DNA from: Phallusia mammillata
Taxonomy: Eukaryota
NCBI GenBank assembly: GCA_965637545.1
Contig: OZ281497.1
Coordinates: forward strand, 24,676,001-24,740,000
Direction of reading: 5' to 3'
Length of the DNA stretch: 64,000 bases
Below, piece after piece: positions 12,458 to 59,600 of this stretch. Both the position numbers and the translations under genes were made by a program. Numbering within the stretch: position 1 is the first letter of the stretch; each line of letters opens with the position of its first letter. The notes under the pieces are model-generated. The model did no database searches. It was not told where the DNA came from and saw nothing but the letters and a program-made list of their open reading frames with translations.

Positions 12458-15400
12458 CTACGATTGTTGAAAAGAACCAGTGAGCGTTGCCACCATAAAT
12501 GGGGCGGTAAATTGGCTCAGGTTTCCCATCTTGCTGGAAGGTTGGGGCTGAACTTCAAGTACATCGTCTGTCACGTTGATTTCATCGTGGTCAGTGGTAC
12601 TAACTCGTGATAGATCCTTAAAAACTAAAATTTGGAAATTAAGTGGATGTTACATTGAGATTGATTGTACTGTTCATATTGTACTTACTTTGTTCTGCCT
12701 TAGGGCGCACAGAAGCATCTCCGTCCCAGCATTTTCTCATGAGGTTTGTGAGGATATTAAAAATCTCCTTGTCATCATCAGCAAGTGTTGTTTCCACATT
12801 TTCGACATACGTCTCATCAGGTCTAACACCTGATGAAATTCGTGCCATCAGGATCTCTTCCGACAGTGTACGGCCGTAAAAAATCGGATTCAATGTCACG
12901 ATTTCATACAAAACCATTCCGAAGCTAAAAAAGGTTACATTTAAAAAAAAAATTGTTATCTCTATCCATATACATGTATTCACACCTGTAAATGTCTGAT
13001 GCTGGGTCAACCGATCCACCTTTGTAAAATTCGGGTGAAACATACAACAACGAATATTGCCTTGTGATGGTCGTGTCTACTGTGCTGGGTTTCATACCTG
13101 AAGCTCTGATGACGTTATTTGCCCCAAAATCGGAAAGTTTAAGGCATAACCTGGTGGTAAGTAGAATATTATCGGGTTTTATATCACCATGACAAAATAT
13201 TTGGCCTGGATTGTAGTTGTGCAGGTATGTAAGAGCCGAGATAAGTTGTCGAGCGAAACGAAGCCTCAACATCCAGCTGACTTTTTTCTCCCTGTGTTTC
13301 TCCAAATAACGTGACAAATTTTCACCACCGATGAATTCCAGTATTATGGCAATCTCGTTATTCCAACTTGTGAAGCCATAAATTTGCACGATGTTTGGAT
13401 GTTGGACTCGAACTAAGGTTTCAGCTTCTCCCTGAACACTGAAATATTATATTTGTTATGTTACTAATGATAAACCACCAATTTTTGTTTTTTCCAGATT
13501 AACCTTGTCTCTACCCATTTGCATTTGAAAGTTAGGAGTTACTGGCAACACGACTTTGTTTTATGTTCAGTGGAATTTGAGTTCATCATTATGACGTCAT
13601 TGTGGTGTGATTACGTCATAGTACACAGGTAGCGCTGTTAATAAAATTTACCTTTACCACACTTCACCTTTTTTTGTGACTGTATATTTGATTTACTTCG
13701 CCAGTCAGAGAAATACATTTTGCAACAACTGTTCCCAAAGATTCGTGGAAACACCGACGAATTGCACCAAATCCTCCACAGCCGATGTAGTCTACTATGT
13801 TAGTGCTAGTTGAAAGCGATACTGCATCGATTTTAGCTAACTTTGATGAAAAGTGGATCTAAAAAAGCACAATTTTGTTACGTAGTTTCAAATACGTTTT
13901 GATATGAAGAACCCTAATCAAGATTTTCGATTTGTTTGGATAGTTTGCTGATCTCAGCTGTAACACTGAAACAGAAAGTTCTTAATGTCCACTTACAAAT
14001 TTGCCGTAAAACACGTATCATCTATTTTATGAAACAACCATCAATAAAAAACAAATTGCAAACTTTCAGGTTCTCATTTCTTCGCTGATATATTTTTAAC
14101 TCGTTGCTGAGGAATTCATCAAGCTGAGAAATGTATTTTCCCACAAGATCTGACCCGTTGCTGTGATCAACAGACAATACGAAAGTTTCCGCTTGCTCCT
14201 TGGCTTTAAAATGAGCGGATTTGATCACTTCCGCGTCCGTGTAACCAGTTCCACATATCTGCAACAACATTCAAGAATGAAAGATAAGTAGAGTCTAGTG
14301 GTTCTCAAAAGGGTGCCACTTGGCTCCCCAGGGGATAAATTTAATTTTCTGGGAGCAAATTCGTTCCAGTAAGGAATTAGGGATGAAAAGTTGTGTATAA
14401 GAAACATTTTCATTACTTTTTAATTAAATTCATAAAATTTGGACAGCCTGCTTCGCCATTCTTACAGCATGTAAGAAGGTCCAGCTGCTGCAGTGACTGC
14501 TGGCATAATAAATCAGGTTTTTCCAACATTTTCTTCTTAGTAGGGATTCGTTGGTACACCGCAAGTCCCGGTGTCGTGGGTTCGAATCCAACCACAGGCC
14601 ACAGTAATGTTTTTGAATCTGGTTTAGTACAACGTACTGTGCTTTTTCATGATTTTGCCTGCGTACCGCACCTTACTGTCTTCCTTGTATTTAACATACC
14701 TCTTCCATTGAGCATCTGTACTGAAGCACGGCACGCATCTTTTTTTCTTCAAGTTGGCCTCTTAGTTCCTCCTGTGACATAGTTTGTTAAAGTAGTCACC
14801 TTTGGTAATTATTTTAAGTCTTGCAGATCTTTTGTCACCTGGCACAATCTAATGCAATTATTTTTATGCAAATAAAACTAATAAAAAACTAATAAATATA
14901 ATAAGCAAATTTACCCGTTTGTGAAGGTTGTTTTCGGTAAATTGCTTCAGCACTGCATCTAAACGACTCTCTAGTTTTTCTTTATACTTTTCCGCTATTT
15001 CTTGTGGATGTTGATTTGTTTGTTGTAAGTATAAATCAACAGCCGTTTTTCGATAACCCTCTTCGATTTCATGTAAATCATTTTCTTCGAAATATTGTCC
15101 ATCGCCTAACTGAAAACATTACAAATGTTTGCATCATTTATTTCCGTGATCGATGAAAGGATAGAAAAATGAGAACATCATCCGTGTGATATATTTCTCC
15201 ACTTTCTTACTGTGCAACTGTACATACTGTACATTAACAGAAAAATTGTCGATGAATTAGACGCTTTATTAATTTAAAGTCCTACAAAATGGCCAATTAA
15301 AATCCAAAACAAAACCAGTTTGGCCAAAAAGCTATTATTTTTTTATCAATCAACTTACGTCGTCACGTCAATCGGTAAAATACCAAACTTAAAGCGAAGG

Positions 15401-17785
15401 AGTAGAAAATACCTACATAAATACCATTAGAAACATACCCACAAGAAATTAGACAGATATGTACAGAGTCAGTAAGATGAATTGATTTCTTATTGTTAAG
15501 TTACCTTACATTAGATTTTAACCAACCTCTCCAAGATTTTGTTTGTATGAACGCTCTGCAGCAAAAATGGATTCCCGCACTTTAAGCTTTACTTGTTCCT
15601 AAAGAGAAACTATACCATTACTCATTTAAAAGTTCGTATTTTCATCAAATCGAAAAACATTATAACTTATATTGAACTATCACCAAACACAAATATACCG
15701 TGCAATAACACAAAAACATAACAAAACCTTTGTAGCCATGTTAATTTTCTTATACTCCTCAAATTCATGGTTTATAATATCTTCCAAGTTTTTTCGATGC
15801 TTTTCAACAAACAAATCGTTGCCAAACTTTGGCATCTGATCAAAGTTAACCAATGTTTTCTTTTTACACACTTCATTGATGTCTAAAATCTCTTTGTCAG
15901 TTTTGTACTTATTTTCACACGCCTGAAACAAAGCGTTTAACTTTAATACTTAGTTTAGGTAGTAAAGGTGCAACTTACCTGATTCATATGTCGGCGATAA
16001 ATATCTCTGCATTTTTGATTAATTTCTAAAATAGCAGCTATCGCCGTTGTCTAAAAACAAGTAAAAATAGTGAGACATCTAAAAAACGGTTCGTTTTTGA
16101 AACAAGACGTCATCGATAAACTGCATGCGCAATGACTGGTAATGATCCCGTTCCATCTAACCTTGTTTAATTTTAGCGCGTATGGGCCATACTTACTTCC
16201 ATAACTGTACCGACTTTGGGCATTTTTCCACTGCAAAATAAATCGACGTATTCAAACGTAAAATTGATGAGATCTTTTCCTGTCACTGGTTTGTTGTTTA
16301 CTTCTTTCACTACAAGATTGTCAGGATGGAAAAGTCGTCGAACAAGAACATCCACCATTTGTTTGAAACAAGTACGTACCCCTAAAAGCCACGTTAATTT
16401 ATGTTTGGGGTGAAAACTGATTTAATTTGGAAGCTCAACAACAAACTCATCACTACTTAGGTAAAAATAGTTTTCTACAAAACCAAAAAGTATTGCAACT
16501 ACCTGCCACATCAAGCTGACTCTGGTTTTCGTACATTCTCCCCAATTTTTCTCCGGGATGAGGCATCAGAAAGCAGGAAACGTTTTTAAAAGAATCACGT
16601 AAATTGTTTCGAACTGATTTAATATCTTTATGATCGTATTGTACTTGGAACACCCTGTCAAGCAGTTCATTCCCTCCATCGAAGCCAAAGGGAACATCAG
16701 GAAAAAGCCAATCTCGGACAAGAAACATTATGTCCTAAAGTAAATTATGTTCATTTTACTACCAATCTACATCCGCACAATCAATTCATATACCTGAAGA
16801 GATCTGTCGTCTTGCTTTAGTATCTTTTGGGCCACTCTTAAGTACTCCGTAAACAGCTGTAAACCGTTCAAAACAGTTAAATGAGGTATGTACAGATTAT
16901 AGTCATTGTACTAACATGCAAATGTTGCAAAGTGTCCTCTTTGATAGTGTTCTGCACGTTGCATATTAGCTTTGAACTTATCAGGGTACTTAGTGCAAAG
17001 ATCACCGAATTATCTTCCACTGAAGATGAGGAATCGAACCAACCTTGAGTGTCCATTAAAAATAATGCCACCTAAGAAACGTTCATCATATATTGTCAAT
17101 TATAACTCTACCTTCAAATCATACTGGTAGATTATTGTGCTCAAACAAACAAAACAAAAATGATTCAACACACCCGTTCGTGTTGACGCGTTTTTACAAA
17201 AAAGGGCTCATCCCATATCCATATTCCGTGTGTGTGGTGCCTCATTCCACCCCTCCATCCAAAACCTCTTAAATCAATTTGTTGTTGTTGTAGCCACGAT
17301 GCTGACTACAATATAAGTGAACGACATCATCACCTCACATATATCTTTCGTTGAAGGTTAGGTATACCTACCGTTTTATTTTGTGCCCACAAAAATCGCA
17401 TCATAAGGTTAAGCATGAATGATTTTCCAGTCCGAAATGGTCCACCAAGAGAGTAAATAGCAACAGGTGTATCAACAACACCTGGATGTTGAAAAATCCT
17501 TTCAAAAGCCGTTTTATCGATACTGTAACGATTTGTGTGATGTGGAAAGATGTGCACTGCCTTATGACCGGTATTGGTGTGACCTTTAAACCACAGTCAA
17601 ATTTTGGATACTTTGAAAACATATTAAACACAGTAAACCGAAAGCAATTGAACTCGAAGCCACTTACCAATATTTGCACTTGTAGATTGAATTCTAAGTT
17701 CCTGGAATCCTTGCTCATTTTGTATCCCTGCTATATCATTCTTTTCCCTGTCAGCAACGTTTTCAGACACTTTGGATTCAGACAT
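12458..17785 (-). CDS. ATL-K1: atlastin/GBP-family GTPase + three tandem three-helix-bundle modules + RIPK-like protein kinase (predicted 981 aa)
   Basis: 17 exons (minus): 17785-17668, 17583-17372, 17305-17174, 17071-16916, 16856-16794, 16734-16503, 16381-16197, 16050-15979, 15922-15728, 15598-15527, 15109-14915, 14771-14700, 14258-14064, 13858-13668, 13438-12986, 12924-12689, 12624-12458. Total 2946 nt, all GT-AG, phase-compatible, no internal stop. GTPase motifs: GPFRTGKS, GWRGGMRHHTHGIWIW, MDTQG, LFTEY, FLVRDW. Kinase motifs: IGCGGFG, VVAK, HGDIKPDN, DFG, YVSPE. Confidence 0.85.
14537..14601 (+). mobile_element. tRNA-derived SINE-like fragment in an ATL-K1 intron
   Basis: Canonical B box GGTTCGAATCC at 14579-14589 with a weak upstream A-box-like segment. 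Absent from the paralogous ATL-K2 intron. No complete cloverleaf. Confidence 0.4.
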
Positions 17786-20929: not shown

Positions 20930-23900
20930 TTACGCTTTTTCAACAGAACTAGTGAGCGTTGCTATAATAAATGGGGCAGTGAATTGACTCAGGTTTCCCA
21001 TCTTGCTTAAATTGGGGGGCAAAGCTTCAGGTACATCGTCAGGCACATTGATTTCGTCGTGATCATCGGTACTAACTTGTGACAACTCATGAGCAACTTT
21101 AAATATAAAATTAAGTAGATGTTACGTTAAGATTGATTGTACTGTTTAATTTACAGTTACTTTGTTCTGCTTTTGGACGCGAAGAAGCATCTCCGTCCCA
21201 ACATTTTCTCATGAGGTTTGTGAGTAAATTGAAAATCTCCTTGTCATCATCAGCAAGAGTTGTTTGAACATTTGTCACATGTTTCACATCGTCGTCCGGT
21301 CTTAGGCCTGATTGAATTCGCAGCATCACCACCAAGGAAGGGCGTTGATTGCCGTGAAAAATCGGATACAATGTCACGATTTCATACAAAACCATTCCGA
21401 AGCTGAAAAAATGTATAAACAACGGGGCTTAATGCAACACCTTGATTGTTTGGAATCATATAGGTTTTGTTTAAATTCTCAATGGTCCTTAGAAACCAAA
21501 TATACAATGACAGCTAACCTGTAGATGTCAGATGATGGGTCAGGTATTCCCTCTTTAAAAAACTCAGGGGAAACGTAAAAAGCTGTATATTCCTTGGTGT
21601 TGCTCGTGTCAACAGTGGTTGTCATTTCAGTAGCTGCTATGACGTTATTTGCCCCAAAATCAGCAAGTTTCACACATAGATTAGTGGTAAGTAAAATGTT
21701 TTCGGGTTTTATATCACAATGACAGAATGTTTCGCCTGGTTTGTAGTTGTGCAAGTATGAAAGAGCTGAGATAAGTTGTCGTGCACATCGAAGTCTCAAC
21801 TTCCAACTCAGCCTTTTTTGCCTGTGTTTCTCCAAGTAGCTTTTTAGATTTCCACCATCTATGTACTCGAGTATTATGGCAACCTCGTTATTCCAACTCG
21901 TAAAGCCATTAATTTGCACAATGTTTAGATGACGGAATCGAACCAACGCTCCAGCTTCCCGCCGAACACTGCAAAGTGTATTAAGTGGTATAAGGATGTT
22001 GAACGTATAATTTTTGACTTTTTACACCGGTCTGTTCATTTGACATTGTCTACATAGATATTTTGGACCATTTTGTCATCTAACCCTTAAACTAAATTTT
22101 TTGATACCAATTAACGTGGAGACAGACTCTTTGAAAACTTCTTTTTCATCATTTTTTGTCCCTTTTTATCATTTTTGTCACTCATTAAATATTTTGCTTG
22201 TACATACCCATTTTTGCGCTTGTCTATTTCTGGACTGCTGCCTTTTAGAGATGTGCACTTTGCAACAACTCTTCCCCAAGATTTGTGGTAGCAACGACGA
22301 ACTGCACCAAATCCTCCACAACCAATGTAGTCTGTCTTGTCAATATTTGTAGCTAGTGACACTGCGTCAACTTCAGTTAACTTGGATGAGAACTGCATCT
22401 GAAACAACGCAAAATATGTAGTTTACGACAGAACAAATTGAGATTAGTTAGTGAAGTGTCGCAGTAGACCATTTCGACAAACAATGTCAACAGTCGATTA
22501 AACATTGTCATTAAAATGTTTAAAATATATTTTTACCTTGGATTGACTCTGTGCTGGTTTTTTAAGGACTTCCACAGATTTAACGACATTGACTTCTTTT
22601 GCAACAGGATGAAAGTGTGGCCTATGGTCTTCTGATGCCCGAGGTTTTGATTGGCTACTGGAGTGAGAGCTCTAAATCAAAAACGTTTTTTAATACAACA
22701 ACAAAACCAAGAAAACCACGGGAAAACTTAAATTAGATGAGCATGTTAAAAAAGGTTAACAAACGTCCAAATTTTCCGTACCGCGGCGTTGAACTCTTTC
22801 GACACGAGATTTCCATCCGAAGTAGAGGGTACTAAAACAGGTATGAAAAAATTTAATGTTTAATGTTTATAACAAACCGGCACAAAAAATAAACATACAC
22901 CGGCATTCCTGAGTTTTTTGTTAACCAAAGATTAAGGATGGATTTTAGCAGTAAATTTTAAATAAACATACAACATTGTTTTCCAGCAGGATTTACGATT
23001 TGGTGTGTTTTAGTTACAAATAGACTTTACTGATATAACAAATCACAAAACGCGTATTTGCAACGATTTTAATTTTTAGACTAACCATCTTTATCCAGCA
23101 TTTTGAACTCATCTTCATTTCCAGTCATTTTATCCTCGTCTTGTCCTTGAGGAAATATCTGAATAACAACAAAATTAACATCATTTTAATGCTAATTTGT
23201 AGGACAATATCCTATCACTATTTTCCATACATTTTCTTCTTTTATGGTTACTAGGTTGCATATTACCTTCAGGCTACAAAAATAAATTTAAAACAACTAG
23301 TCCAAATAGTTTAAAATACCCATAAACTTGGGGTGAACTTGCAATTGATAGACGTGTCTAACACCACAAACCTGTCGCCTTGCTCGGTAAGCTTGCTGGG
23401 TATGCCGCTGATCAACGAAAGGAAGTGATGAGTTGAGCATATTTACTAGAGATGAAGCAGATGTAATAAGTTCCGGATCATTGGCTTCATGAATCAGACC
23501 ACACACTCGCTTGATATTCTCCGCATATAAGTTAAACTCAGATGTAATGGGTTCCAATAACCAAAGTTTCTTAAGTGACCAATCTTCCCCGGAGCTTTTA
23601 GAGACCAAGTTTTCAAGTCTACGAAAAACAAAAGAATCGCACATACCAAAAGCAAACTTGGATACAAGTTTCCATCGGTCCTCGGTTAAATGTTTCTGCT
23701 GCTTTCGAAATTCGTTCAAGGGCAAGACCATCATCATGTAGAAAGCGCCAACTCGCATTCTTGGCCCTGTAGATGATCTGTTGTTACATATTGGCTACAA
23801 GTGAAAGCAAGAATTCGAGTAAGTGAAACAGACTGAATATCTCCATCGTAATTCATCAGGCAGTTGAGTGTCAATATGAAATTGACAGGAACATAACAGT

Positions 23901-25689
23901 ATGCAAATACATTGCTGTTTAGGACAAGTTTTTGGTGTATAGCATCATATTTGCTTCCACATATCTGTCGTCCGAGCTGGATCTGCGATTTTTGAGATAA
24001 ACCAAGTATCTGGACTATAAACCTGGGTCGGTACGACGGATGAAGGTTGTATAGTTGAGCTGGTCGTGATGTAAATATCTTCCGAGCACGTGGAAGCAAG
24101 TTTCCTCCCGCTAAATGCTTCAAGTACCCTTCTGCAAAATTTCGTCCATTTAATAGTGGTTTAGGAACCAAACTGGAAAATGATTTAAATGCTGCCATAT
24201 CTAAACCATCGAAAATGATCAAAACATTAGGATCACTGCAAATGGCAGCGAGTATAATAGTTGCCTCATCAGGTGTGCAAATCCAATCCGATAACATGGT
24301 GGAAATGAGAAACTGAAGAAGCGTCATTTTTGTAGTGAAGTTAAGTAGCCTGATGACAATGTAAAAGATAAACGATACTCTTCCACACAATTGTCCATCT
24401 AACGCTTGGAGGGCCCACTTTTTTGCTGGTGTGGTTTTTCCTATTCCAGCTTGCCCAATCACGCCAACTATATTTCCATGTCTTTCGATGTAGTTTTGTT
24501 TTGCTTGTTTTTCATGCATTTTAAATTTTTTCGAAGCCTCGTGATGTGAAAGTAGTTTGGCAACATTAAACATTTCTGCACCAGTAATGTTACTTTCAGG
24601 TCTTTCATGAAGTTTTTTAAAAGTCTCTTCTTGGTGATAATGTCCTTCTGCTTGAAACATGTCGTCAATTTGTTTTGGTTTGTTAATTAGGGCAACGGGG
24701 ACGGGTTCTATAGCTTGGTCTAAAAACTCAGCAAGAGACGATTCTTTACTGGCGATGTCTTTGACTTCTCTCTTTAGTAAAGACTTCAGTTCTTCACCCA
24801 AAAGTGGAAGGAAATATATGTATGTCACTATGGTGCTCTCAGTTACAATGCGGTAAACTGCGCTCCTTTATAGTGGTATTGTGTTCGCACGTGTAATTGT
24901 TGGTTGTGCTCTGTTTTTAAAGATTTCCGCTACTGAATCGCAGATCTATTCCAAACCAAAAAAGTGTTCTACAAACGTAGTCGTTTTCATGTTATCTAAA
25001 AATGAAAACTAGAATATTTGTTTAATGATTTTCATTTAGCTTCGTTTCCCATGAACTACGTAACGTTAAATATATTTTTTTAACCCACAAGTCAAACAAA
25101 GCATGTCCTTACATTTTTCATTTCCTGGGGCTGGTGTTGTTTGCTGATGTTGACTTGCTGAAGGCTGGGCTGCTGTAGATTGATAGGGTTTCTGATTGAT
25201 CAAGATATACTGATGAAATTCTACCGGTGCGTTGAACACTGGTCCAGTCGTGTGGGTGATGGTGTCTCCAAACTGTGGAGCTTCTGCTTCCCCCTAAAGT
25301 CAATGATAACCATTTTAAATAAATTGCAACTTCCTTAGTTGTACGATCCTTTTTAATTTCTTACAATATTAATAACATTGCCTTCTGGATTAACTGGAAC
25401 CATGTTGATTGCATTTGTCGGTGGTTCTTCTTTTGCTGCTTCTTTAGATAAATTGGACTGGGGTCGAACATTGTCCGATTCTCGGAATACGCCAATTGGA
25501 GGCACAACGTCACCGGAACCTTAAAATATACAACTTGTGTCAACAAAATCGTAAAGCTAAAATGCTTTGTAAGTTACCTGCATTATTAGTTTGACTGTTT
25601 TGGGGAACATCATTATCCAAGACTTGAGATGAGTTTAGTTGGGGTAAAGCATCGCCCAATGAGGGCGCATTAGGTCCGTGTTGAGCCAT
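20930..25689 (-). pseudogene. NLR-K1: disrupted RHIM-like + NACHT + RIPK-like kinase gene; kinase exons still open
   Basis: Exons 25689-25578, 25519-25365, 25293-25113, about 24797-23372, 22671-22537, 22398-22208, 21968-21519, 21402-21161, 21096-20930. The NACHT exon acceptor is GG instead of AG (24798-24799). A net 208-nt deletion relative to NLR-K2 at 23744-23754 removes the winged-helix region and shifts the frame. Walker A region GKTTP and Walker B DGLDM deviate from the paralog. Confidence 0.8.
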
Positions 25690-32369: not shown

Positions 32370-35300
32370 TTAAACAGAACTATTGAGCGTTGCCACCATA
32401 AATGGGGCGGTGAATTGGCTCAGGTTTCCCATCTTACTGGAAGATTGGGGCTGAACTGCAAGTACATTGTCAGCCACATTGGTTTCGTCGTGGTCAGTGG
32501 TACTAACTTGTGATAAATCCTGAAAAACTAAAAATAGGAAATTAAGCTTATGTTATATTAAATTGATTGTATTATTTATTTTGCAGTTACTTTGTTCTGC
32601 CTTAGGGCGCACATAAGGATCTCCATTCCAGCATTTTCTCATAAAGTCAGTGAGGATATTGAAAATATGCTTCTCATCACCAGCAAGTGTTGATTTTACA
32701 TTATTAACATGCGTCTCATCCGGTCTTACACCTGATGAAATTCGTGCCATCAGGATCTCTTCCGACAGTGTACGGCCGTAAAAAATCGGATTCAATGTCA
32801 CGATTTCATACAAAACCATTCCGAAGCTAAAACGAAGACATTTTTTCAAAATTTGTTAACTGTTTCCAACTACAGGCATTCACACCTGTAAATGTCTGAT
32901 GCAGGGTCAACCGATCCACCTTTGTAGAATTCGGGTGAAACGTACAACAACGAATATTGCCTTGTGATGGTCGTATCTATTGTGCTGTGTTTCATACCTG
33001 AAGCTCTGATGACGTTATTTGCCCCAAAATCGGAAAGTTTAATGCATAACCTGGTAGTAAGTAGAATATTATCGGGTTTTATATCACCATGGCAAAATAT
33101 TTGGCCTGATTTGTAGTTGTGCAAGTATGAAAGAGCCGAGATAAGTTGTAGAGCGAATCGAAGTCTTAACTTCCAACTCGGATGTTTCTCCCTGTGTTTC
33201 TCCAAATAACGTGACAAATTTCCACCACCGATGAATTCCAGTATTATGGCAATCTCGTTATTCCAACTCGTGAAGCCATAAATTTTCACGATGTTTGGAT
33301 GTTGGACTCGAACCAAGGTTTCAGCTTCTCCCTGGACACTGAAATATTATATTTGTAAAGTAAAAAATGTCGTTTTTACTGATGATAAACAACCAATTTT
33401 GTTTTCCAGATTTACCTTATTTTTACCCATTTGCATTTGAAACTTACTGGCAACACGAATTTGAGTTCATCATTATGACGTAATTGTGCTGTGATTACGT
33501 CACAGTACACAAGTAGCGCTGTCATTAAAAATTTACCTTTACCACACTTTACCTTTTTTTGTGACTGTATATTTGATTCACTTCGCCTGTGAGGGAAATA
33601 CATTTTGCAACAACTGTTCCCAAAGACTCGTGGTAACATCGACGAATTGCCCCAAATCCCCCACACCCGATGTAGTCTACTATGTCAGTGCTAGTTGAAA
33701 GCGATACTGCATCGATTTTAGCTAACTTTGATGAAAAGTGGATCTAAAAAGCACAATTTGTTACGTAGTTTCAAATATATTTTTACATGAACGATCCTAA
33801 TCGACATTTTCAAAATGTTTGATTAGTCCGGCACATTTATTGATCTCAATACAGTAAACATTAAACTGTAACATTTGTTTAAGTCGAGGTTCATTGGTGT
33901 AAAACATATTCCTTGGGTTTACAAAAAAGATTTTTTTAGATTCGTTGTCCATTGCTTTACGTAACAAACAAGCACAAGCTTCGACATTTTACTCGTATCA
34001 GCTTGCTCAAAATGTGGGATTCGCCAAGTCGGACTTTGCCTCAATGTCCAAACGGATTTTTAAGATATGGGAGTATTTTTGACGTACCGCACATAAAATG
34101 ATCAAAAAAGTCCGGTTCGTGTCTTCTATTCAGCAAAATAACTCTAAACGACAATTTTACAAACTTTCAGATTCTCAATTCTTCTTCGACACAATTTTAA
34201 CTCGTTGTTAAGAAATTCATCAAGCCGGGATATATATTTGCCCACAAGCTCCGATCCTTTGCTGTGATCCACTGACAAGACAAGGGTTTCTGCTTGCTCC
34301 TTCGCGTTGGAATGAGTTTGTTTGATTATTTCCGCGTCCGTTGAACCAGTGCCACATATCTGCGCAACATTTACGGTTGGAAGATATGGCGAAAAATAAA
34401 AAAGTATGGTGAAAATAGTAGCGATTATCGTGTCGATTAATCTGTTATGACTGATTGTTTAACAACAATATGTTGCCTTCAGTAAGGTGTATTGTTTTAT
34501 TCATCAGTATTTGTAACTCCATTTGAAGTGGTACATACCTCTTCCATTGAGCTTCTGTACTGTTGGATGGCACAAGTCCATTTTCCATCAAGTTGGCGCC
34601 GCAAATTCTCCTGTCAAGATATTGAACTTTTACACTTGTTATGACAAAACGTTTTGATGAGCTTAGCAGATGTATTGTCCCCTGGCAAAATATCATGCAA
34701 GTGTCTTAAACACTGACATTGTTGAAAATATAACTAAAACTAATAATTTGACACAAAGTTTTAAAAATAAATCATTGTAAATATTACTCCTTTGTGATGG
34801 TTTTTCTCTTTAAATTGCTTCAGCGCTTCATCTAAACGTCTCTCTAGTTTTCCTTTATACTTCTTCACTATTTCTCGTGGATATTGATGTGTTTCTTGGA
34901 AATATAAATTAACAGCTGTTTTTCGAAAGCTCCCCTCGATTTTATGCACTGAGTTTTCGTCAACATGTTGTCCACTGCTTAACTGAAAACATAAATAAAA
35001 CAGCATGCAACAATACATATGTTTTTACCACATATGTATAGATATGTAATCAATGATAGTCAACAAATCAAGAAATGCTACACTACCGCTGTTAAACAAT
35101 TGTCCAAAGAGTTCATGCGAAATTTGAAATGATCGGATTTATAAACGTTTTTACATTATTCTATTTTATTCATTCATTTAAAAATTCTTTGTCTGGATTG
35201 TAACAAGGTTTATGTCAATAGACAATCAAAAATTACTTTACGTTTTTTGTGACATATTATGTAACCAATATAATAACATTGTCTACCTCTTCGAGATTTT

Positions 35301-38150
35301 TTGTGTACATTTGTTCAGCAGCAAATGTAGATGCGTGCGCTTTGAGTTTCATTTGCTCCTAAATAAAGATAAAAACTAAAAAAAGCTTTAATCTTTGTTT
35401 TGTATTACTGTTCGCGATTTTGATAAAATTTGCACTTCACACCACTATGGGTTGTCCAATCATTATTTTTTGTTCAACGGTGCAACAAACATTACATTTA
35501 CTTTTTCTTAAACATTTATCAAATAATTTTTTTAAAAACCTTTTCGGCTCCGTTAATTTTCTTGTACTCTTGAAATTCATTTTCTACGAAGTCTTGCAAT
35601 TTTTCAAAATACATTTTGTGAAACGCATCGTTGCCAAACTTGGGCTTGACTTCGAAGCTCAACAAGACTTTTTCTTTGCACTTATAATGGATGTTTATAA
35701 ATTCTTCGTCACTTTTGAAAGCGTTTTTGCACAACTGCAAGGAACAAATCTTTCACTTTAAGTATTTTTACAGTTAGCATACTGATTAACCACCAATTTA
35801 CCCGTTTCATTTCTTGGCGATACTCGTCTTTGCATTCTTGAACAATGTTTAAAATGTCCGCCGTTGCCGTAGCCTAAAACAACACAGTTAAACTACGCGT
35901 TTTTCATGAGGATCAATTTTACAAAAAAATCAGTTTAACCTCTTGTGTTATTTTCAAACCAATACAAATAACAAGATATATTGTTCTAGAATCTAGACAA
36001 TCTACGTCCAACTCACCTGGACACTGGTGCCAATTTTAGGCATTTTTTCGCTGCTAAAAACGTCAGCGTATTCAGACACAAAATTGATGAGATCATTTCC
36101 TTTTACCGGTTTGTTGTTGAATTGTTTTACGACTAGTTGATCGGGATGAAAAATTCGCCTAGCAAGGACTTCCACCATTTCTTTGAAGTTGTCATGTAGA
36201 TCTTAAAAGCGAAGTACCAGTTTTCAACTGCCTTTTCCTTTTAGTTTAATGTTTTAAGTTTGAAGAAATCACATTGTTTTTCAGCAATGACAAATTACTT
36301 AAAAAGCTTGTATTTTCATTCTCTATTGTCCCGAACTTATGTGTTGACAATTCGATACACATACTAACCACTTGACAAGTCTAAATGAATGTTCTCTCGG
36401 TGCCTCTCGGCAATTTTGTTTCCAGGAAAAGGCATGATGAAACACGAAACATTTTCAAATGAATCAAGCAAGTTTTTTCTAACTGATTTGATATCTAAAT
36501 GATCGACGTGTACACGAAAAATTTTCTGAAGATATTTATCCCCTCCATCAAATCCAAGCGGAATCTCAACGTAAGGGAAGTCACGGATAAGAAACAGCAA
36601 TTCCTGAAACAAGGTAAGTGTTTTACAAAACAAAAACTCCATAACATTTCACAAACCTGGAACGAATTGTTATCATGCTTCAGGACTTTTTGTGCCATTC
36701 TTGCGTATTCAGTAAACAGCTGTAAACAACTATATTTAACATCACTGTGTGCGTAGTGAACAAAACTAAGTAGTTAAACAAAACTGACGTGAAGATGTTG
36801 CAATGTGTCTTCTTGAATCATTTGTCTTGTGTTGTATATTTGCATCGAACTTATAAGGGTGCTTAATGCAAAGACCATGGCGTTGTCTTTCACAGAGGAT
36901 AAAGCGTCGAACCCACCTTGGGTATCCATCAGAAATAATGCAACCTATAAATAGTTTTTGAAACATTATTGTCACAAAACGATTTTTTGATGTCTTCTAC
37001 AGTACAAAAAAATTGATAAATTTCTTGCGGTAACTAAAATCAGGACAAAAACAGAAGACAAAAACCAACAAGGCCGTGATGAGAAGTGGATACAAAAAAA
37101 GGCTCATCCCATATCCATATTCCTTCTGTGTGGTGCCTCATCCCATCACTCCACCCAAAACCTTCGTCCAATTTAATTTTTTGGGATTGAACCCATGACT
37201 GTGACTAAAACAAAATATATAGCACTATAACCTTACGCAACAAATGATTTTTTTATTATTACCACCAAACAAATATACCGCATTGCTTTTTTCTGCCCAT
37301 AAAAAACGCAGAAATAGGTTAAGCATGAATGATTTTCCTGTTCTTGATCGCCCACTAATAGAATAAATGGCAACAGGTATGTTGGCGACATTTGGATGAT
37401 TAAATATCTCCTGAAATGCCTGTTTGTCGATTCTGTAGCCATGTCTGTCATCCCGGACGATAATTTCCACAGCTTTGTGAGCAGGAAGACAGTCTACCCT
37501 CTCAAAGCCTAAAAACAAGATATTCAGAAAACAACATCAAGTTAATTTTGGAAGTAGCAAATAATGTAACTTCCCAACCTCAATGTTGTAATAGAATTTG
37601 TTAAAAATAAACAAATACAAAAATAGTTGCTTTCAAAAACTTCATTGATAGATAACTTTCAGTTTCGATCAGGCATCAGGATTTGGGACACACTAACATA
37701 TTTACTTTACTGTGCAAACATTATTAGGCTTTAAAAATTCAACGATAAAATCTTTCCGTTTGGATAGACAACAGTAACATTTCCAACGCAATGTGAAGAT
37801 GCTATTATTACACAACAGTAATTCAGATATACGAAATGCGTTAACTAAATCGACCCATTTTCAAGCATTCCCGGCGATAAAATTCGGCCTGCTGTAGGTT
37901 TCGAACCTCCGACAAAACCATGCTACACACAAGGTGCTGTTTGCCCACCTAAACTACGCAGACAGAAAGTCAAAATACATGCCGCGTATGCACTGGGATG
38001 TGAACTCACGTTTGAAAACTGCTGTGGCTGATGATGACTAAGAACACGTAAAAATCACTTACCAACATCCGCATGTGTAGTTAAAAGTTCCTCTTCTTTT
38101 TGATTATCTTCAATTTCACCAGAAATCCCAGGATAGCTGGATTCAGACAT
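32370..38150 (-). pseudogene. ATL-K2: atlastin/GBP-family GTPase + 3x helical module + RIPK-like kinase, with a single +1 frameshift before the kinase
   Basis: Exons 38150-38063, 37508-37279, 37204-37070, 36944-36789, 36719-36657, 36603-36369 (or 36372), 36201-36017, 35873-35802, 35734-35540, 35358-35287, 34982-34788, 34610-34539, 34360-34165 (196 nt instead of 195), 33743-33553, 33338-32886, 32826-32591, 32527-32370. Motifs: GRSRTGKS, RHHTEG, DTQG, FLIRD, HGDIKPDN, DFG. An extra A (plus-strand T4 at 34329-34332) gives TGA at 34222-34220. It could be a sequencing error or a kinase-less 612-aa GTPase. Confidence 0.7.
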
Positions 38151-53666: not shown

Positions 53667-56600
53667 TTACGCTTTTTCAACAGAACTAGTGAGCGTTGCT
53701 ATAATAAATGGGGCAGTGAATTGACTCAGGTTTCCCATCTTGCTTAAATTGGGGGGCAAAGCTTCAGGTACATCGTCAGGCACATTGATTTCGTCGTGAT
53801 CATCGGTACTAACTTGTGACAACTCATGAGCAACTTTAAATATAAAATTAGGTAGATGTTACGTTAAGATTGATTGTACTGTTTAATTTACAGTTACTTT
53901 GTTCTGCTTTTGGACGAGAAGAAGCATCTCCGTCCCAACATTTTCTCATGAGGTTTGTGAGTAAATTGAAAATCTCCTTGTCGTCATCAGCAAGAGTTGT
54001 TTGAACATTTGTCACATGTTTCACATCGTCGTCCGGTCTTAGGCCTGATTGAATACGCAGCATCACCACCAACGGAGGTCGTTGATTGCCGTGAAAAATC
54101 GGATACAATGTCACGATTTCATACAAAACCATTCCGAAGCTGAAAAAATGTATAAGCAACGGGTTTAATGCAACACCATGATTGGTTGGAATACAGGTTT
54201 TGTTTAAATTCTACCCAAATATACAATGACAGCTAACCTGTAGATGTCCGATGCTGGGTCAGGTATTCCCTCTTTAAAAAACTCAGGGGAAACGTAAAAA
54301 GCTGTATATTCCTTGGTGTTGCTCGTGTCAACAGTGGTTGTCATTTCAGTAGCTGCTATGACGTTATTTGCTCCAAAATCAGCAAGTTTCACACATAGAT
54401 TAGTAGTAAGTAAGATGTTTTCAGGTTTAATATCACAATGACAAAATGTTTCGCCTGGTTTGTAGTTGTGCAAGTATGAAAGAGCAGAGATAAGTTGTCG
54501 AGCGAACCGAAGTCTCAACTTCCAACGCAGGTTTTTTTGCCTGTGTTCCTCCAAGTAGCTTTTTAGATTTCCACCACCGATGAATTCCAGTATTATGGCA
54601 ACCTCGTTATTCCAACTAGTAAAGCCATAAATTTGCACGATGTTTGGATGACGAAATCGAACCAACGCTCCAGCTTCCCGCCGAACACTGCAAAGTGTAT
54701 TTAGTGGTATAAGGATGTTGAACGTAAATTTTTTGACTTTGTACACTGGTCTGTTCATTTGACATTGTCTACGCAGACATTTTGGACCATTTTGTCACCT
54801 AACCCTTAAATTAATGTTTTGATACCAATTTACCTTGAGACAGACTGTTGGAAAACTTGATTTTTATTATTTTTTGTTATTTTTGATAATCAAAACCACT
54901 AATCAAATATTTTGCTTATACACACCCATTTTTGCGCTTGTCCATTTCTGGACCGATGCCTTTCAGAGATATGCACTTTGCAACAACTCTTCCCCAAGAT
55001 TTATGGTAGCAACGACGAACTGCGCCAAATCCTCCGCAACCAATGTAGTCTGTCTTGTCAATATTTGTAGCTAGTGACACTGCATCAACTTCAGTTAACT
55101 TGGAGGAGAACTGCATCTGAAACAACGCAAAATATGTCGTTTACGACAGAACAAAGTGAGATTAGTTAGTGAAGTGTCGCAGTAGACCAGCGGATCTCAA
55201 TGTGGGGTCCGCGGAACTTTAAGGGTCCGTGAGGCAATTTTGGGGGAACCGCGAAGTTGAAGTAATGCGATATTATTATTTGGCGTCAGTTTGTGTCACT
55301 AAAGAAGTTTAAATCAAAGTTGAATTGAGAATTGACTGCCTCCATTGCTAGACAATAGCCTTTATTGAATGACAACTATCAAAAACGCAATTGTTCACAA
55401 TCGTAATGCTTCTTGTTTTGTCTGTGATGTTACAAGCTGTCTTTGGATGATTATTATGCGCCCTTTTGCATAACTAGCTAAAATCAACTTTCGTTTCTAT
55501 GAAATACACATTTAGGCTTAGGACCGCGACCCCTCAAAACAATGGCAAAAAAACGTTTTGAAAAAAATATGAAAAAGTTTGATAACCACTGCAGTAGACC
55601 ATTTCGACAAACAATGTCAATAGTCAATTCAACACTACCATTAAAATGTTTAGAATATATTTTTACCTTGGATTGACTCTGTGCTGTTTTTTTAAGGATT
55701 TCCGCAGATTTAACGACAATGTGTTCTTCAGGATTAGAGTGTGGCCTATGGTCTTCTGGTGCCCGAGATTTTGGTTGGCTACTAGAGTGAGAGCTCTAAA
55801 CCAACGACGTTTTTTAACACAACGATAAAATAACCAAACCACAGAAAAAATAAATTAATTTAGCATGTCAAAAAATTTTTACATTTTCCGTACTGTAATC
55901 AAATTAAAACAATTAGTTTAAAATACGACTTAAACTTGATGTGAAATTGATATGTCTAATAGCACAAACCTCTCCCCTGGCTGGGTGAGCTTCCAGGGCA
56001 TGCCTCTGATCAAAGGAAGGAAGTGATGAGTTGAGCATTTTTAATAAAGATGAAGCAGATGTAATGAGTTCCGGATCATTGGCTTCATTAATCCAATTAC
56101 ACACTCGCCTGATATTTTCCGCATATAAGTTCAACTCAGATGTAATGGGTTCCAATAACCAAAGTTTTTTAAGTGACCAATCTTTCGCGGAGCTTGTTGA
56201 GACCAAGGTTTCAAGTGTATCAAAAACACCAGAACCGCACATACCAAAAGCAAACTTGGATACCAGTTCCCATTTGTCCTCGGTTAGTTGTCTCCGTAGC
56301 CTTTGAAAGTCATCCAAGGGCATAATCATCATCATGTAGAAGGCGGCAAAAAACTCCTGCCAGGTGAGATGAGAAAAGTATCTTACTTTGTGTCCGTCTA
56401 ATATCGTCAGCTTCATATTCACTTGCTTTGTTACTGGTATGTTTAGGAATGCATTTATCGTTGAAGATTTAATCCCAGCTTTTTCAAAGTCCCTGTCTTT
56501 TAAAACAAATTTTCCGTTGAGAAAAGCATCCCAAGCCATTTTTGCCAGTTTCTCCATATCACATTCTTGACTCTTCGGATGATCTGTTGTTAGATATTGG

Positions 56601-59600
56601 CTAAAAGCAAAAGCTAGAACTCGTGTGAGTGAAACAAACTGAATATCTCCATCGTAATTCATCAGGTAGTTGAGTGTCAATATGAAATTGACAGGAACAT
56701 AACAGTATGCAAATACATTGGGGTGTTGGATAAGTTTTTGGTGTATAACCTCGTAGTTGTTTCCACATATCTGACGTCCAAGTTCATCCTGTGATGTTGG
56801 AGTTAAACCAAGTATCTGGACTATAAACTTGGGTCGGTATGAAGGATGGAGCTTGTGCAGTTGAGATGGTCGTGATGTGAAAATCTTTCGAGCACGTGGA
56901 AGCAAGTTTCCTCCCGCTAAATGCTTCAAGTAACATTCTGCAGTATTTTTTTCATGTAACAGTGGTTTCGAAATCAAACTTGAAAATGATTTGAATGCTG
57001 CCTCATCCAAACCGTCGCAAATGATCAAAACGTGAGGATCACTGCAAATGGCAGAGAGTATAACGGTTGCCTCGTCACGTGTGCAGTTCCAGTCTGATAA
57101 CATGGTGGAAACCAAAAACTGAAGAAGCGTCACCTTATCCATGAAGTCAAGGTGCCTGATCGCAATGTAAAAGACAAATGATACTCTTCCACATAACTGT
57201 CCACGTATAGCTTGTAGGGCCCACTTTTTGGAAATAGTGGATTTTCCTATTCCAGCTTGTCCAATAACGCCTAAGACATTTCCATGTTTTTCGATGTAGT
57301 TTTGCTTAGCTTCTTTTTCAACTGTTCTAAATATTTTCGAAGCCTCGTGTTGTGCCATCAGTTGTGCAACATTAAACATTTGTTCACCGGTAAAGTCACT
57401 TGGTGGTTCATAGACCTCCTTTATGCGGCGGTAGTGTCCTTCTGCTTGAAAATCGTCTTCAATTTGTTGTGGTTTGCTGACCATGGCAACGGGGACGGGT
57501 TCTATAGCTCGGTCTACAATTTTAGATAGTGACGATTCATCATCAGCGATGGCTTCAACTTTTTTGGTGAGTAGAAACTGTAGTTGCTCATCTAAAAGAG
57601 GAAAATTAATAGTTTGACAAATAATTTTTCGTCATCATGGTGCTACAATGCGGTGAGCTGTGTTCCTTTGTAGTGCATTGCGGTAGCATGTGTCGTCTGC
57701 TTTCTTACGAACGTGAGTGACACTACTTTCGCGTTTTAATAAGTGGGTTTTCTTAAATATTGCAACTACTGACGGTTGCAAACATAGGGGTAAACCTGTT
57801 AACTAGCAATTAAAACCTATGAATAATCCTATTATGTGTGTGTTTTAATGATCTTTTTTTGTTTCGTTTCCGGTGGACTACGTCACGTAAACATTTTAAA
57901 ATTTTCTCAAACGACTTAACTCAAAAGTCAGACAAAGATAGTCCTCACATATTTCATTTTCAATGGCTTGTGTTGTTTGCTGATGCAGACTTGCTGAAGA
58001 CTGGGTTACTGTAGATGGGCTCTTTGCTCTCCCAGGTTGTGCTACCGGAGGAGGAGGACTTTCTGATTCCGTCCATAGGTTATGGTCTGTATGTGGTTGC
58101 TTTGCATTGCACCCTGGTCCACTTGTGTTGGTGGTTGTGTCACCAAGCTGTACCACTTGTGCTTCCCCCTAAAATAAATTTATTATCGGTTATAGATGAT
58201 TACACTGGTCAACACAATTTTTGGTGTCTTTAATGTTAAAACTGATATTGACTAATTTTGGGGTGCTGATTTCAAAAATCATTACGGTTTTCTTCAACCA
58301 GATCAACTTTTTAAGTTATTTACAAAATCAAAATTTATGACCATATTGATTCAATGACTTTAAAATCATGCTTTTATGTGTTTGTTAAAGTTTTGTTACA
58401 TTATACACATCAATTTCCTACAGTGCAGTCAGTTTTATAGCATATGCGTTCTATGCTTATGCTCTGTCTAAAAATGGTTGGTGCAGGCTAGCGGTAACTT
58501 TGAACTATACATGTTTTATGGAATGATTTTCAGTCTAGTAAAGCAAGGTGGTAAAACTAAAATTAATAGTGGCTAGGTCATCTATAAGGTGTTGCATGAA
58601 TTACCAAGATGTTTTATGCTACATTTCTGGTGTAAACCCATACAACACAACTAAAAAGAAAAAAAGGTCTGTATCAAATGTGCATATCTTGCACACTTCG
58701 ATGAGGTCTTAGGGGTTTAGGACAAGCAATTGGCTCCACTTACCTAATGTTGACTGGAATATTGCAGTACTGGACAAAAACAGCAAAAAGGGACTGAAAT
58801 TATTAGAAAGAGTACATAACTAAGTTATTGAGCGGTCTGAAAAATTCGGTAACAAAATGAGTATAAAGCTACACTTCCCTCTTGAAACGTAGGTGATAAA
58901 ATTGATCAGAATTAAGCTGAAAGGTTTCATCAGGATATTAGTAAAACAAAATGTGTCAGGGAAGAAGGAATAATGTGGTCCTGGCTAACTGCTGTTGGTC
59001 AATTAAACGGGACGATATTGCTGCCACTCAGTTCCGAAAGTTACCAAAGTACATGTGTAGGGGTATACCTGATAACTTACACATTTGAAACATTTTTTTG
59101 TTTTTTTGTGTTGAATTTTGTTTCTTAGGAGTGTCCACCTGTTACATTTAAAATTAAATTCGAAATTTTGTTCTTGCAATAACGTTAATTCTAAATAAAT
59201 ACTCAAAACCAGTTTTACTTTTGTGTATAACTTACATATAGATTGTTTTTCAAATGTGGATGTACCATAACACAAAAACTAGACGTGATACAGATAAACT
59301 GGTTGCATTTTTGAAATCAGAGCACTAGAATTAGTCAAAATCAGTTAAAACATTCCAGACACTAGTAAAAAAATATTTTTTTTTTGTTGCCCAGTGTAAC
59401 CATTGGAAATAAAAGTATAATAGATCTTTTCGAATTTCTTACAATTTTTGTAACATTGCTTTCGGGATGAGCTGGAATTAAGTGGGCTGGAACTGTATCC
59501 GATTCTCGGGATACACCAAGTGGAGATGAAATGTCAACCGAACCTTAAAATATACAACTTGCGTCAAGAAAATCGTAAAGTTATAGGATGCTTTGTAAAT

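Follow-up and report, generated by a model that had tools for sequence, protein, structure and literature searches.

A predicted fusion of an atlastin-type GTPase with an IRAK/RIPK-type kinase in an ascidian gene cluster

Can a GTPase of the dynamin superfamily be wired directly to a protein kinase, within one gene and one polypeptide? This question is raised by a locus of the ascidian Phallusia mammillata, which we analyzed within a window of 64,000 nucleotides (nt), C4:24676001-24740000 of the 240-Mb assembly GCA_965637545.1, where C4 stands for the window's contig (OZ281497.1) and feature positions follow the numbering of the window unless a contig is named. A sequence-only reading of this DNA had proposed that one of its genes, here called ATL-K1, encodes a soluble atlastin/GBP-like GTPase fused to a RIPK-like kinase. 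A single-gene fusion is also our best reading of the DNA, with the joined transcript itself inferred. We hold with moderate confidence that ATL-K1 and its paralogue ATL-K2 are real single genes, each encoding a soluble atlastin-type GTPase, a charged helical stalk of ~270 amino acids (aa) and a complete non-RD kinase of the IRAK/RIPK type, with the origin and working that are set out below.

Gene model and GTPase/kinase junction

ATL-K1 was rebuilt on the minus strand (17785..12458) as 17 exons, with all introns bounded by GT..AG and a coding sequence of 2946 nt for 981 aa and a stop (Table 1), which agrees with the intact 981-aa model proposed before. The single open frame runs from an ATG at 17785, which has an in-frame TGA 5 codons upstream, to a TAG at 12460-12458. 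At the junction of the 2 halves, exon 13 ends in ...RRNENLK at 14064 and exon 14 opens with IHFSSK at 13858, and the phase-0 join over a 205-nt intron was recovered exactly as it had been described. In ATL-K1 as in ATL-K2, exon 14 begins with ATC, immediately preceded by an in-frame TAG, and in ATL-K1 no Met follows for 119 codons; in both genes, the kinase part reaches its first Met (residue 753 in ATL-K1, 804 in ATL-K2) only after Gly loop, catalytic Lys and helix C. Because no Met precedes the catalytic core and the TAG lies in frame, the kinase module should not be translatable on its own, in line with the earlier claim that it has no start codon, and a kinase-only product started at the first Met would lack the N-lobe. 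In most paralogues, the homologue of exon 14 likewise has a Met-less start directly after the acceptor (VVSSKL, VTFSSKL, TNTISSKL), and it opens with Met (MQFSSKL) only in 3 copies that are linked to NACHT domains.

The paralogue ATL-K2 has kept the same organization: exons 4-16 are equal in length to those of ATL-K1, and the junction reads ...RRIENLK/IHFSSK... in the same phase within an intact 970-aa frame, in agreement with the claim that it is conserved. Between the 2 genes, the ratio of nonsynonymous to synonymous substitution rates (dN/dS) was 0.20-0.26 for the G domain, 0.19-0.45 for the stalk and 0.06-0.47 for the kinase, with the lowest kinase value (0.06) in exon 14, while exon 1 showed 20% amino acid identity and a dN/dS of ~1.25. 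These values indicate purifying selection on all structured parts. The proposed GTPase-kinase fusion gene is thus supported by the junction, its phase and open frames in 2 paralogues, by the dN/dS of all structured parts and by the missing kinase start.

Two introns of ATL-K1 hold further features. Intron 12 contains a tRNA-derived element resembling a short interspersed nuclear element (SINE) at 14413-14600, with a GGTTCGAACCC-type box and antisense to the gene; this insertion accounts for an intron length of 441 nt versus 179 nt in ATL-K2. ARAGORN called no tRNA in the element, and peptides resembling its own (FEP.TPG...) appear at other loci. A hydrophobic open reading frame (ORF) in intron 10 was considered as a hidden exon and rejected, as this intron does not align to ATL-K2.

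Table 1. Coordinates of ATL-K1, ATL-K2 and neighboring features, in window numbering unless a contig is named
Feature	Position	Strand	Remarks
ATL-K1 exons 1-4	17785-17668, 17583-17372, 17305-17174, 17071-16916	minus	rebuilt model
ATL-K1 exons 5-8	16856-16794, 16734-16503, 16381-16197, 16050-15979	minus	rebuilt model
ATL-K1 exons 9-13	15922-15728, 15598-15527, 15109-14915, 14771-14700, 14258-14064	minus	rebuilt model
ATL-K1 exons 14-17	13858-13668, 13438-12986, 12924-12689, 12624-12458	minus	rebuilt model
ATL-K1 exon 1	17668..17785	minus	start codon and N-terminal peptide MSES..., fast-evolving
Predicted atlastin-type G domain, ATL-K1 exons 2-7	16197..17583	minus	aa ~45-366; Pfam GBP and solved-structure matches
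Helical repeats, ATL-K1 exons 8-13	14064..16050	minus	aa 367-633; 3 x 89 aa
ATL-K1 intron 13, GTPase/kinase junction	13859..14063	minus	205 nt, phase 0, GTTTGC...TTTTAG
Protein kinase domain, ATL-K1 exons 14-16	12689..13858	minus	aa 634-927; Pfam Pkinase
C-terminal tail, ATL-K1 exon 17	12458..12624	minus	ends ...SKMGNLSQFTAPFMVATLTGSFQQS, then stop
ATL-K2	32370..38150	minus	intact paralogue, 970 aa, 17 exons, phases as in ATL-K1
High-identity tract (end of intron 13, intron 14)	ATL-K1 13859-13941 and 13439-13667; ATL-K2 33744-33826 and 33339-33552	minus	shared by ATL-K1 and ATL-K2
NACHT-kinase copy B	20933..24867	minus	kinase 20933-22404 intact; NACHT 24867-23737 and 23794-23300
NACHT-kinase copy D	53670..57631	minus	NACHT exon, linker exon, four-exon kinase module
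G-domain-only piece	C4:24781968-24783122	plus	exons 2-6 only; convergent to a NACHT-kinase gene

The GTPase, stalk and kinase of ATL-K1

The sequence-only reading had credited ATL-K1 with a complete G domain, including the P-loop Arg, DTQG and RD, and all of these motifs could be located: GPFRTGKS at residues 87-94 (R90, K93, S94), DTQG at 161 and VRDW at 233. The Pfam GBP profile (PF02263) matches exons 2, 3, 4 and 6 in collinear order (profile positions 3-43, 44-68, 75-126 and 158-226), and the peptide of exon 7, which covers the end of the G domain and the linker, aligns with atlastin residues ~268-343. Given that the P-loop lines up with GAFRKGKS in ATL1 and that both LMDTQG and VRDW occur, the G domain looks competent. 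In a search of solved structures, the G-domain exons were nearest to atlastin-1, atlastin-3 and Drosophila atlastin (3e-15, 1.6e-6, 1e-11 and 2e-4), with GBP2 among the matches of one exon (2e-3), and Pfam found no GBP_C domain on any ATL-K1 exon. Of the earlier label "atlastin/GBP-like", the atlastin part therefore holds (1e-11 to 3e-15) and the GBP part does not, and the G domain of both ATL-K proteins is classed here as atlastin-type rather than GBP-type.

Exons 8-13 consist of 3 units, each made up of a 72-nt and a 195-nt exon, with every boundary in phase 0. The helical stretch that they encode is charged (44 K+R, 49 D+E) and contains 2 Pro. When compared with one another, its 89-aa repeats gave weak profile matches (E 3.5e-4 to 0.015) that were always in register, which would fit a triplication long ago; they showed no significant match to solved atlastin structures or to Pfam. 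A transmembrane segment was not found in ATL-K1, because the top Kyte-Doolittle mean over 19 residues was only 1.35 and lay inside the G domain, and the C-terminus (...SFQQS) carries no CaaX box. Both absences had been noted before, and the protein is accordingly predicted to be soluble. We also considered a CaaX box gained by retention of intron 13, as read-through of ATL-K1 ends in ...CFIK; this was taken as chance, because neither ATL-K2 (...CKIVV) nor the kinase-less relative on contig C2 described below has a CaaX ending.

The kinase part of ATL-K1 matches Pfam Pkinase on exon 15 (6e-25) and carries GCGGFG at 659, VVAK at 677-680 (K680), HGDIKPDN at 780-787, DFG at 800 and SPE at 831, with the catalytic motifs kept across 10 paralogues. 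As the Gly loop, K680, HGDIKPDN, DFG and SPE are all present, the kinase is apparently catalytically complete and predicted to be active. Its catalytic loop, HGD, is of the non-RD kind and identical to that of IRAK1 in the alignment. Solved structures were searched both with the single sequence and with a profile; plant Pelle/RLK kinases, IRAK1, RIPK2, IRAK4 and RIPK1 came out with similar scores (RIPK2 1.8e-12; RIPK1 6e-16 in the profile search; IRAK1/4 and plant RLKs similar), along with partial matches to AMPK/Snf1 and JAK, and the identity of the kinase region to bird RIPK1 (29%) was close to that to a plant LRR-RLK (27%). What had been called a "RIPK-like kinase" is hence a complete kinase whose best matches are not specific to RIPK, given that IRAK1, RIPK2, IRAK4 and plant RLKs score similarly; the searches support an IRAK/Pelle/RIPK-type non-RD kinase of the TKL group, which may loosely be called "RIPK-like". 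On the ATL-K1 exons, Pfam found no RHIM, death domain or CARD, nor any Roc, Ras or COR domain, and an [IV]Q[IVLF]G motif is absent. The tail encoded by exon 17, which has no Pfam match either, contains the motif KMGNLSQFTAPF(M/I)(V/I)ATL, common to ATL-K2 and the NACHT-kinase copies.

The kinase region as a whole shares 33-38% identity with a large ascidian kinase family over ~340 aa. Its nearest named relative in the databases is a P. mammillata protein that its source calls "RIPK1-like" (P0032), which is 78-91% identical to the genome; the locus nearest to it lies among >15 densely packed kinase exons at C4:22.32-22.40 Mb, which are 40-47% identical to the ATL-K kinase. In Clavelina, members of the family carry their kinase N-terminally and continue with TPR, with TIR and Roc, with Sushi, or with nothing; one of them, a 777-aa protein of Clavelina lepadiformis (P0167), joins kinase, TIR and Roc/Ras in a ROCO-like combination. 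Relatives with kinase and Kelch come from metagenome-derived (ENA/JGI) sequence of unknown organism.

Shared kinase cassette and origin of the fusion

The window holds 4 minus-strand genes in alternating order: ATL-K1, NACHT-kinase copy B, ATL-K2 and NACHT-kinase copy D. In copy D, the exon that encodes NACHT, WH and HD2 (57631-55916) is intact, with 572 aa and a Pfam NACHT match of 4.6e-18; it is followed by a linker exon at ~55795-55666 and the kinase module at 55116-53670, and all 3 junctions that were read are compatible with phase-0 joining. In copy B, a deletion relative to copy D spreads the NACHT exon over 2 frames, and this exon may be broken. The NACHT-kinase genes of the cluster have no leucine-rich repeats (LRRs), and further copies lie at C4:24.742-24.746 Mb (L001) and C4:24.786-24.790 Mb (L004).

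Genome-wide, kinase exon 15 has 8 close copies (68-100% identity), located at C4 24.689-24.828 Mb. At least 4 of the 6 that do not belong to an ATL-K gene follow a NACHT exon (B, D, L001 and L004), and no NACHT exon was identified for the remaining 2. In a tree of exon 15, ATL-K1 and ATL-K2 form a clade with 99% support that is nested among the NACHT-linked copies. Because the ATL-K kinases nest among copies that share the module, we regard the kinase as a mobile cassette of four exons that is entered in phase 0 and carries a conserved tail motif. Its presence on both NACHT and atlastin scaffolds is a clear case of exon shuffling within an immune gene cluster.

For the GTPase half, a G-domain tree grouped ATL-K1, ATL-K2 and the piece at C4:24.782 Mb with 98% support and placed kinase-less atlastin-like genes at C2:15.2 Mb as their sister group, in keeping with a single capture and subsequent duplication. 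Downstream of the piece on C4, no stalk or kinase exons were found, and the piece is probably a remnant. The closest G-domain relatives are the kinase-less atlastin-like genes at C2:15262001-15282000, with ~69% identity. In one of these, at C2:15.272-15.278 Mb, an exon ends in ...FQRRNENLK with the same GTTTG donor as at the ATL-K1 junction; past that donor, the gene carries on with more repeat exons, of 24 aa and 65 aa, and its last exon encodes a hydrophobic tail rich in Gly and Ala. Because this donor is shared, ATL-K appears to have swapped the extra stalk and the Gly/Ala-rich (membrane) tail for the kinase cassette. We thus propose an origin by replacement of a 3' module, in which an atlastin-derived GTPase gene, of a family expanded in this ascidian, would have shed its further repeats and tail and gained, through a phase-0 intron, the same four-exon cassette that ends the adjoining NACHT (NLR-type) genes. 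A second fusion was considered at C2:15203001-15223000, where a kinase of two exons that looks active (HQDLKPDN, DFG; 29% identical to the ATL-K1 kinase) lies 6 kb past a set of atlastin-like G exons. This candidate at C2:15.20-15.22 Mb was set aside, as a retrotransposon with reverse transcriptase/integrase ORFs lies between the G exons and the kinase and makes their linkage doubtful.

The cassette has a later history as well. Synonymous divergence (dS) between ATL-K1 and ATL-K2 is 0.6-1.2 on the 5' side of the junction and 0.17-0.24 on the 3' side, with the break inside intron 13. Introns 1-12, 15 and 16 do not align between the 2 genes; identity is 82% over the final 83 nt of intron 13, whose remainder is unalignable, and 77% over intron 14. 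As dS falls at the junction and high identity starts within intron 13, the pattern shows a kinase cassette that was either converted between ATL-K1 and ATL-K2 or later exchanged, with the breakpoint in that intron.

Proposed working, known systems and rival explanations

Atlastin G domains dimerize head to head upon GTP binding, through the P-loop Arg; NACHT domains oligomerize on nucleotide binding, and IRAK and RIPK kinases are activated within oligomeric assemblies. In ATL-K, by analogy, GTP binding would lead to a head-to-head G-domain dimer as in atlastin, with the stalk possibly adding higher-order assembly; the dimer would bring the C-terminal kinases together and switch on signaling by induced proximity, an outcome that the sibling NACHT-kinases would reach through ATP-driven oligomerization. 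The best argument for induced proximity as a shared logic is that a single cluster holds both kinds of engine with one and the same cassette attached, and the setting points to cytosolic innate immunity. Dimerization-driven activation of the kinase is nonetheless our inference by analogy. We put forward tentatively, and at less than even confidence, that ATL-K is the first dynamin-superfamily GTPase wired to a protein kinase, acting as a GTP-gated soluble innate-immune switch, and that the cassette is an exchangeable output, passed across STAND ATPase and atlastin-type engines via phase-0 introns.

Among known systems, the atlastins (ATL1-3 and Drosophila atlastin) are closest to the G domain exon by exon, with GxxRxGKS, DTQG and RD aligned. 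However, they possess a transmembrane hairpin and a C-terminal amphipathic helix, both absent from ATL-K, which has a kinase in its C-terminal part instead, and a single three-helix bundle where the stalk of ATL-K is predicted to consist of three 89-aa repeats. The GBPs (GBP1/2/5) resemble ATL-K in that they, too, are large, soluble GTPases whose PF02263 G domain is followed by a long helical extension, and a role in immunity is possible for both; the GBPs differ in having GBP_C and often a CaaX box, while ATL-K lacks both and is far nearer to atlastin in sequence. ROCO proteins such as LRRK2 and Dictyostelium Roco4 likewise carry a GTPase and a TKL-type kinase on the same polypeptide, with a scaffold that forms a nucleotide-dependent dimer. 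Their GTPase is a Roc/Ras domain with COR, whereas that of ATL-K belongs to the dynamin superfamily and has no COR, so the likeness is one of analogy only. The RIPK, IRAK and Pelle/RLK kinases gave the best solved kinase matches, with an HGD loop identical to that of IRAK1, yet no death domain, CARD or RHIM accompanies the kinase in ATL-K. Finally, the NACHT-kinases of the cluster share the four-exon cassette, its phase-0 entry and the tail motif, and differ in their N-terminal engine, which is a STAND ATPase and not a dynamin-superfamily GTPase.

Another comparison is offered by BmAtlastin-n of Bombyx, a cytoplasmic protein without transmembrane segments and with a coiled-coil middle, reported to be antiviral (PMC4926086). 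Like ATL-K, it is an atlastin-clade GTPase lacking transmembrane segments; unlike ATL-K, it is reported with a C-terminal domain of no known function, and the passages of that source drawn on here mention no kinase (PMC4926086). The same passages suggest a GBP-like immune role for a transmembrane-less atlastin relative in silkworm and state that no GBPs were found in Ciona (PMC4926086). ATL-K would extend this idea of transmembrane-less atlastin relatives in GBP-like immune roles, in animals reported in those passages to be without GBPs (PMC4926086).

A full-text literature search found no atlastin/GBP-kinase fusion. What would be new is an NTPase-kinase fusion with a dynamin-superfamily GTPase, while NTPase-kinase signaling fusions as such are already known. 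In LRRK2 and further ROCO proteins, control of the kinase by nucleotide state is a subject of study, and atlastins and GBPs are the best-understood GTP-driven dimerizers. A natural atlastin-kinase fusion would offer a direct and simple system for asking if G-domain dimerization alone activates an IRAK/RIPK-type kinase, and the exchange of the cassette in ascidians, if true, would be a natural experiment showing proximity alone as the activating principle.

Several observations weigh against a GTP-gated fusion protein. Among the public RNA-labelled runs searched, none contained the locus, and hence no spliced read was obtained. Two contigs of 512 nt and 195 nt, ~94% alike, over exon 15 came from 4 RNA-labelled runs; the loose end of the 512-nt contig matches intron 14 of ATL-K2 exactly, and because it thus represents unspliced (or genomic) ATL-K2 exon 15 with flanking intron, it is uninformative on splicing. 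In a set of 5.8 billion proteins, a word-index search with exon 15 (E<=1e-20) found no fragment of ATL-K1. An exhaustive search of representative sequences gave 203,451 kinase matches, topped by multi-kinase or plant RLK proteins. Searches for database relatives covered the best 150 matches within length windows, and the combination of GBP and kinase was absent among the 19 closest database kinases scanned; no GBP fusion occurred among 67 relatives of the kinase region of the Clavelina protein P0100 (length window 358-1139 aa), in which kinase was seen with TPR, TIR and Roc, Sushi or Kelch. As the kinase halves of ATL-K1 and ATL-K2 are linked by recent conversion or exchange, the conserved junction therefore amounts to roughly one observation on the kinase side. 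Lastly, the ATL-K kinase is non-RD, and kinases of this kind are often independent of activation-loop phosphorylation; the HGD loop therefore weakens trans-autophosphorylation of the activation loop as the specific switch, though not induced proximity in general.

This last point leads to the alternative that survives best, which we still consider unlikely: the fusion is real, and its GTPase serves for targeting or scaffolding and not as a dimerization switch, taking a non-RD kinase that is constitutively active to a membrane, to the surface of a pathogen or to a partner, or else the kinase regulates the GTPase and stalk through phosphorylation. Besides the HGD loop shared with IRAK1, the long and charged stalk would suit this alternative, as would the Gly/Ala-rich hydrophobic tail that ends the kinase-less relatives and suggests that the family works at membranes. 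On the other hand, every recognizable membrane anchor is gone from ATL-K, and the presence of the cassette on NACHT, known for nucleotide-driven oligomerization, favors a shared proximity logic.

Rather less probable is an artefact of the gene model, with the GTPase-stalk and the kinase as separate transcription units and no fusion protein, either in an operon with a spliced leader (SL) at the exon-14 acceptor or with a different first exon for the kinase. Ascidians use SL trans-splicing and operons, the runs searched gave no RNA support for the join, and the Met-initial exon 14 (MQFSSKL) of 3 NACHT-linked copies would suit a separate kinase. Moreover, read-through of the exon-13 donor stops after 13 codons in ATL-K1 and 5 in ATL-K2, making a GTPase-only isoform possible. 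Against this stand, in both ATL-K genes, the ATC after an in-frame TAG and the late first Met of the kinase (after 119 codons in ATL-K1), the Met-less start of exon 14 in most paralogues, the shortness of intron 13 (205 nt), and the phase-0 fit with open frames that 2 paralogues have maintained.

We give low credence to an integrated decoy, in which the cassette would bait effectors aimed at host RIPK/IRAK-like kinases and the NTPase would report modification of the cassette, on the principle of plant NLRs that have a kinase domain built in. The occurrence of a single cassette on 2 unrelated NTPase scaffolds in a birth-and-death cluster would fit this, as would the strong expansion of the kinase family in ascidians with many partner domains; we know, however, of no effector. 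The retention of every catalytic residue and the dN/dS of exon 14, the lowest of the kinase at 0.06, speak against a decoy, yet decoys can remain active. Most improbable of all is a recent, functionless chimera or pseudogene pair born by rearrangement in a dynamic cluster, for despite decay nearby (the disrupted NACHT exon of copy B and, at C4:24.782 Mb, a remnant reduced to its G domain), both frames of 17 exons have stayed intact at a dS of ~1 in the GTPase half, with dN/dS well below 1.

Elsewhere in the window, positions 2068-4323 are occupied by a 30-nt tandem repeat of ~75 copies with 85% matches and a strong A/T and G/C skew; one of its frames reads TTTTDATAGK and resembles a mucin-like, Thr-rich coding repeat.

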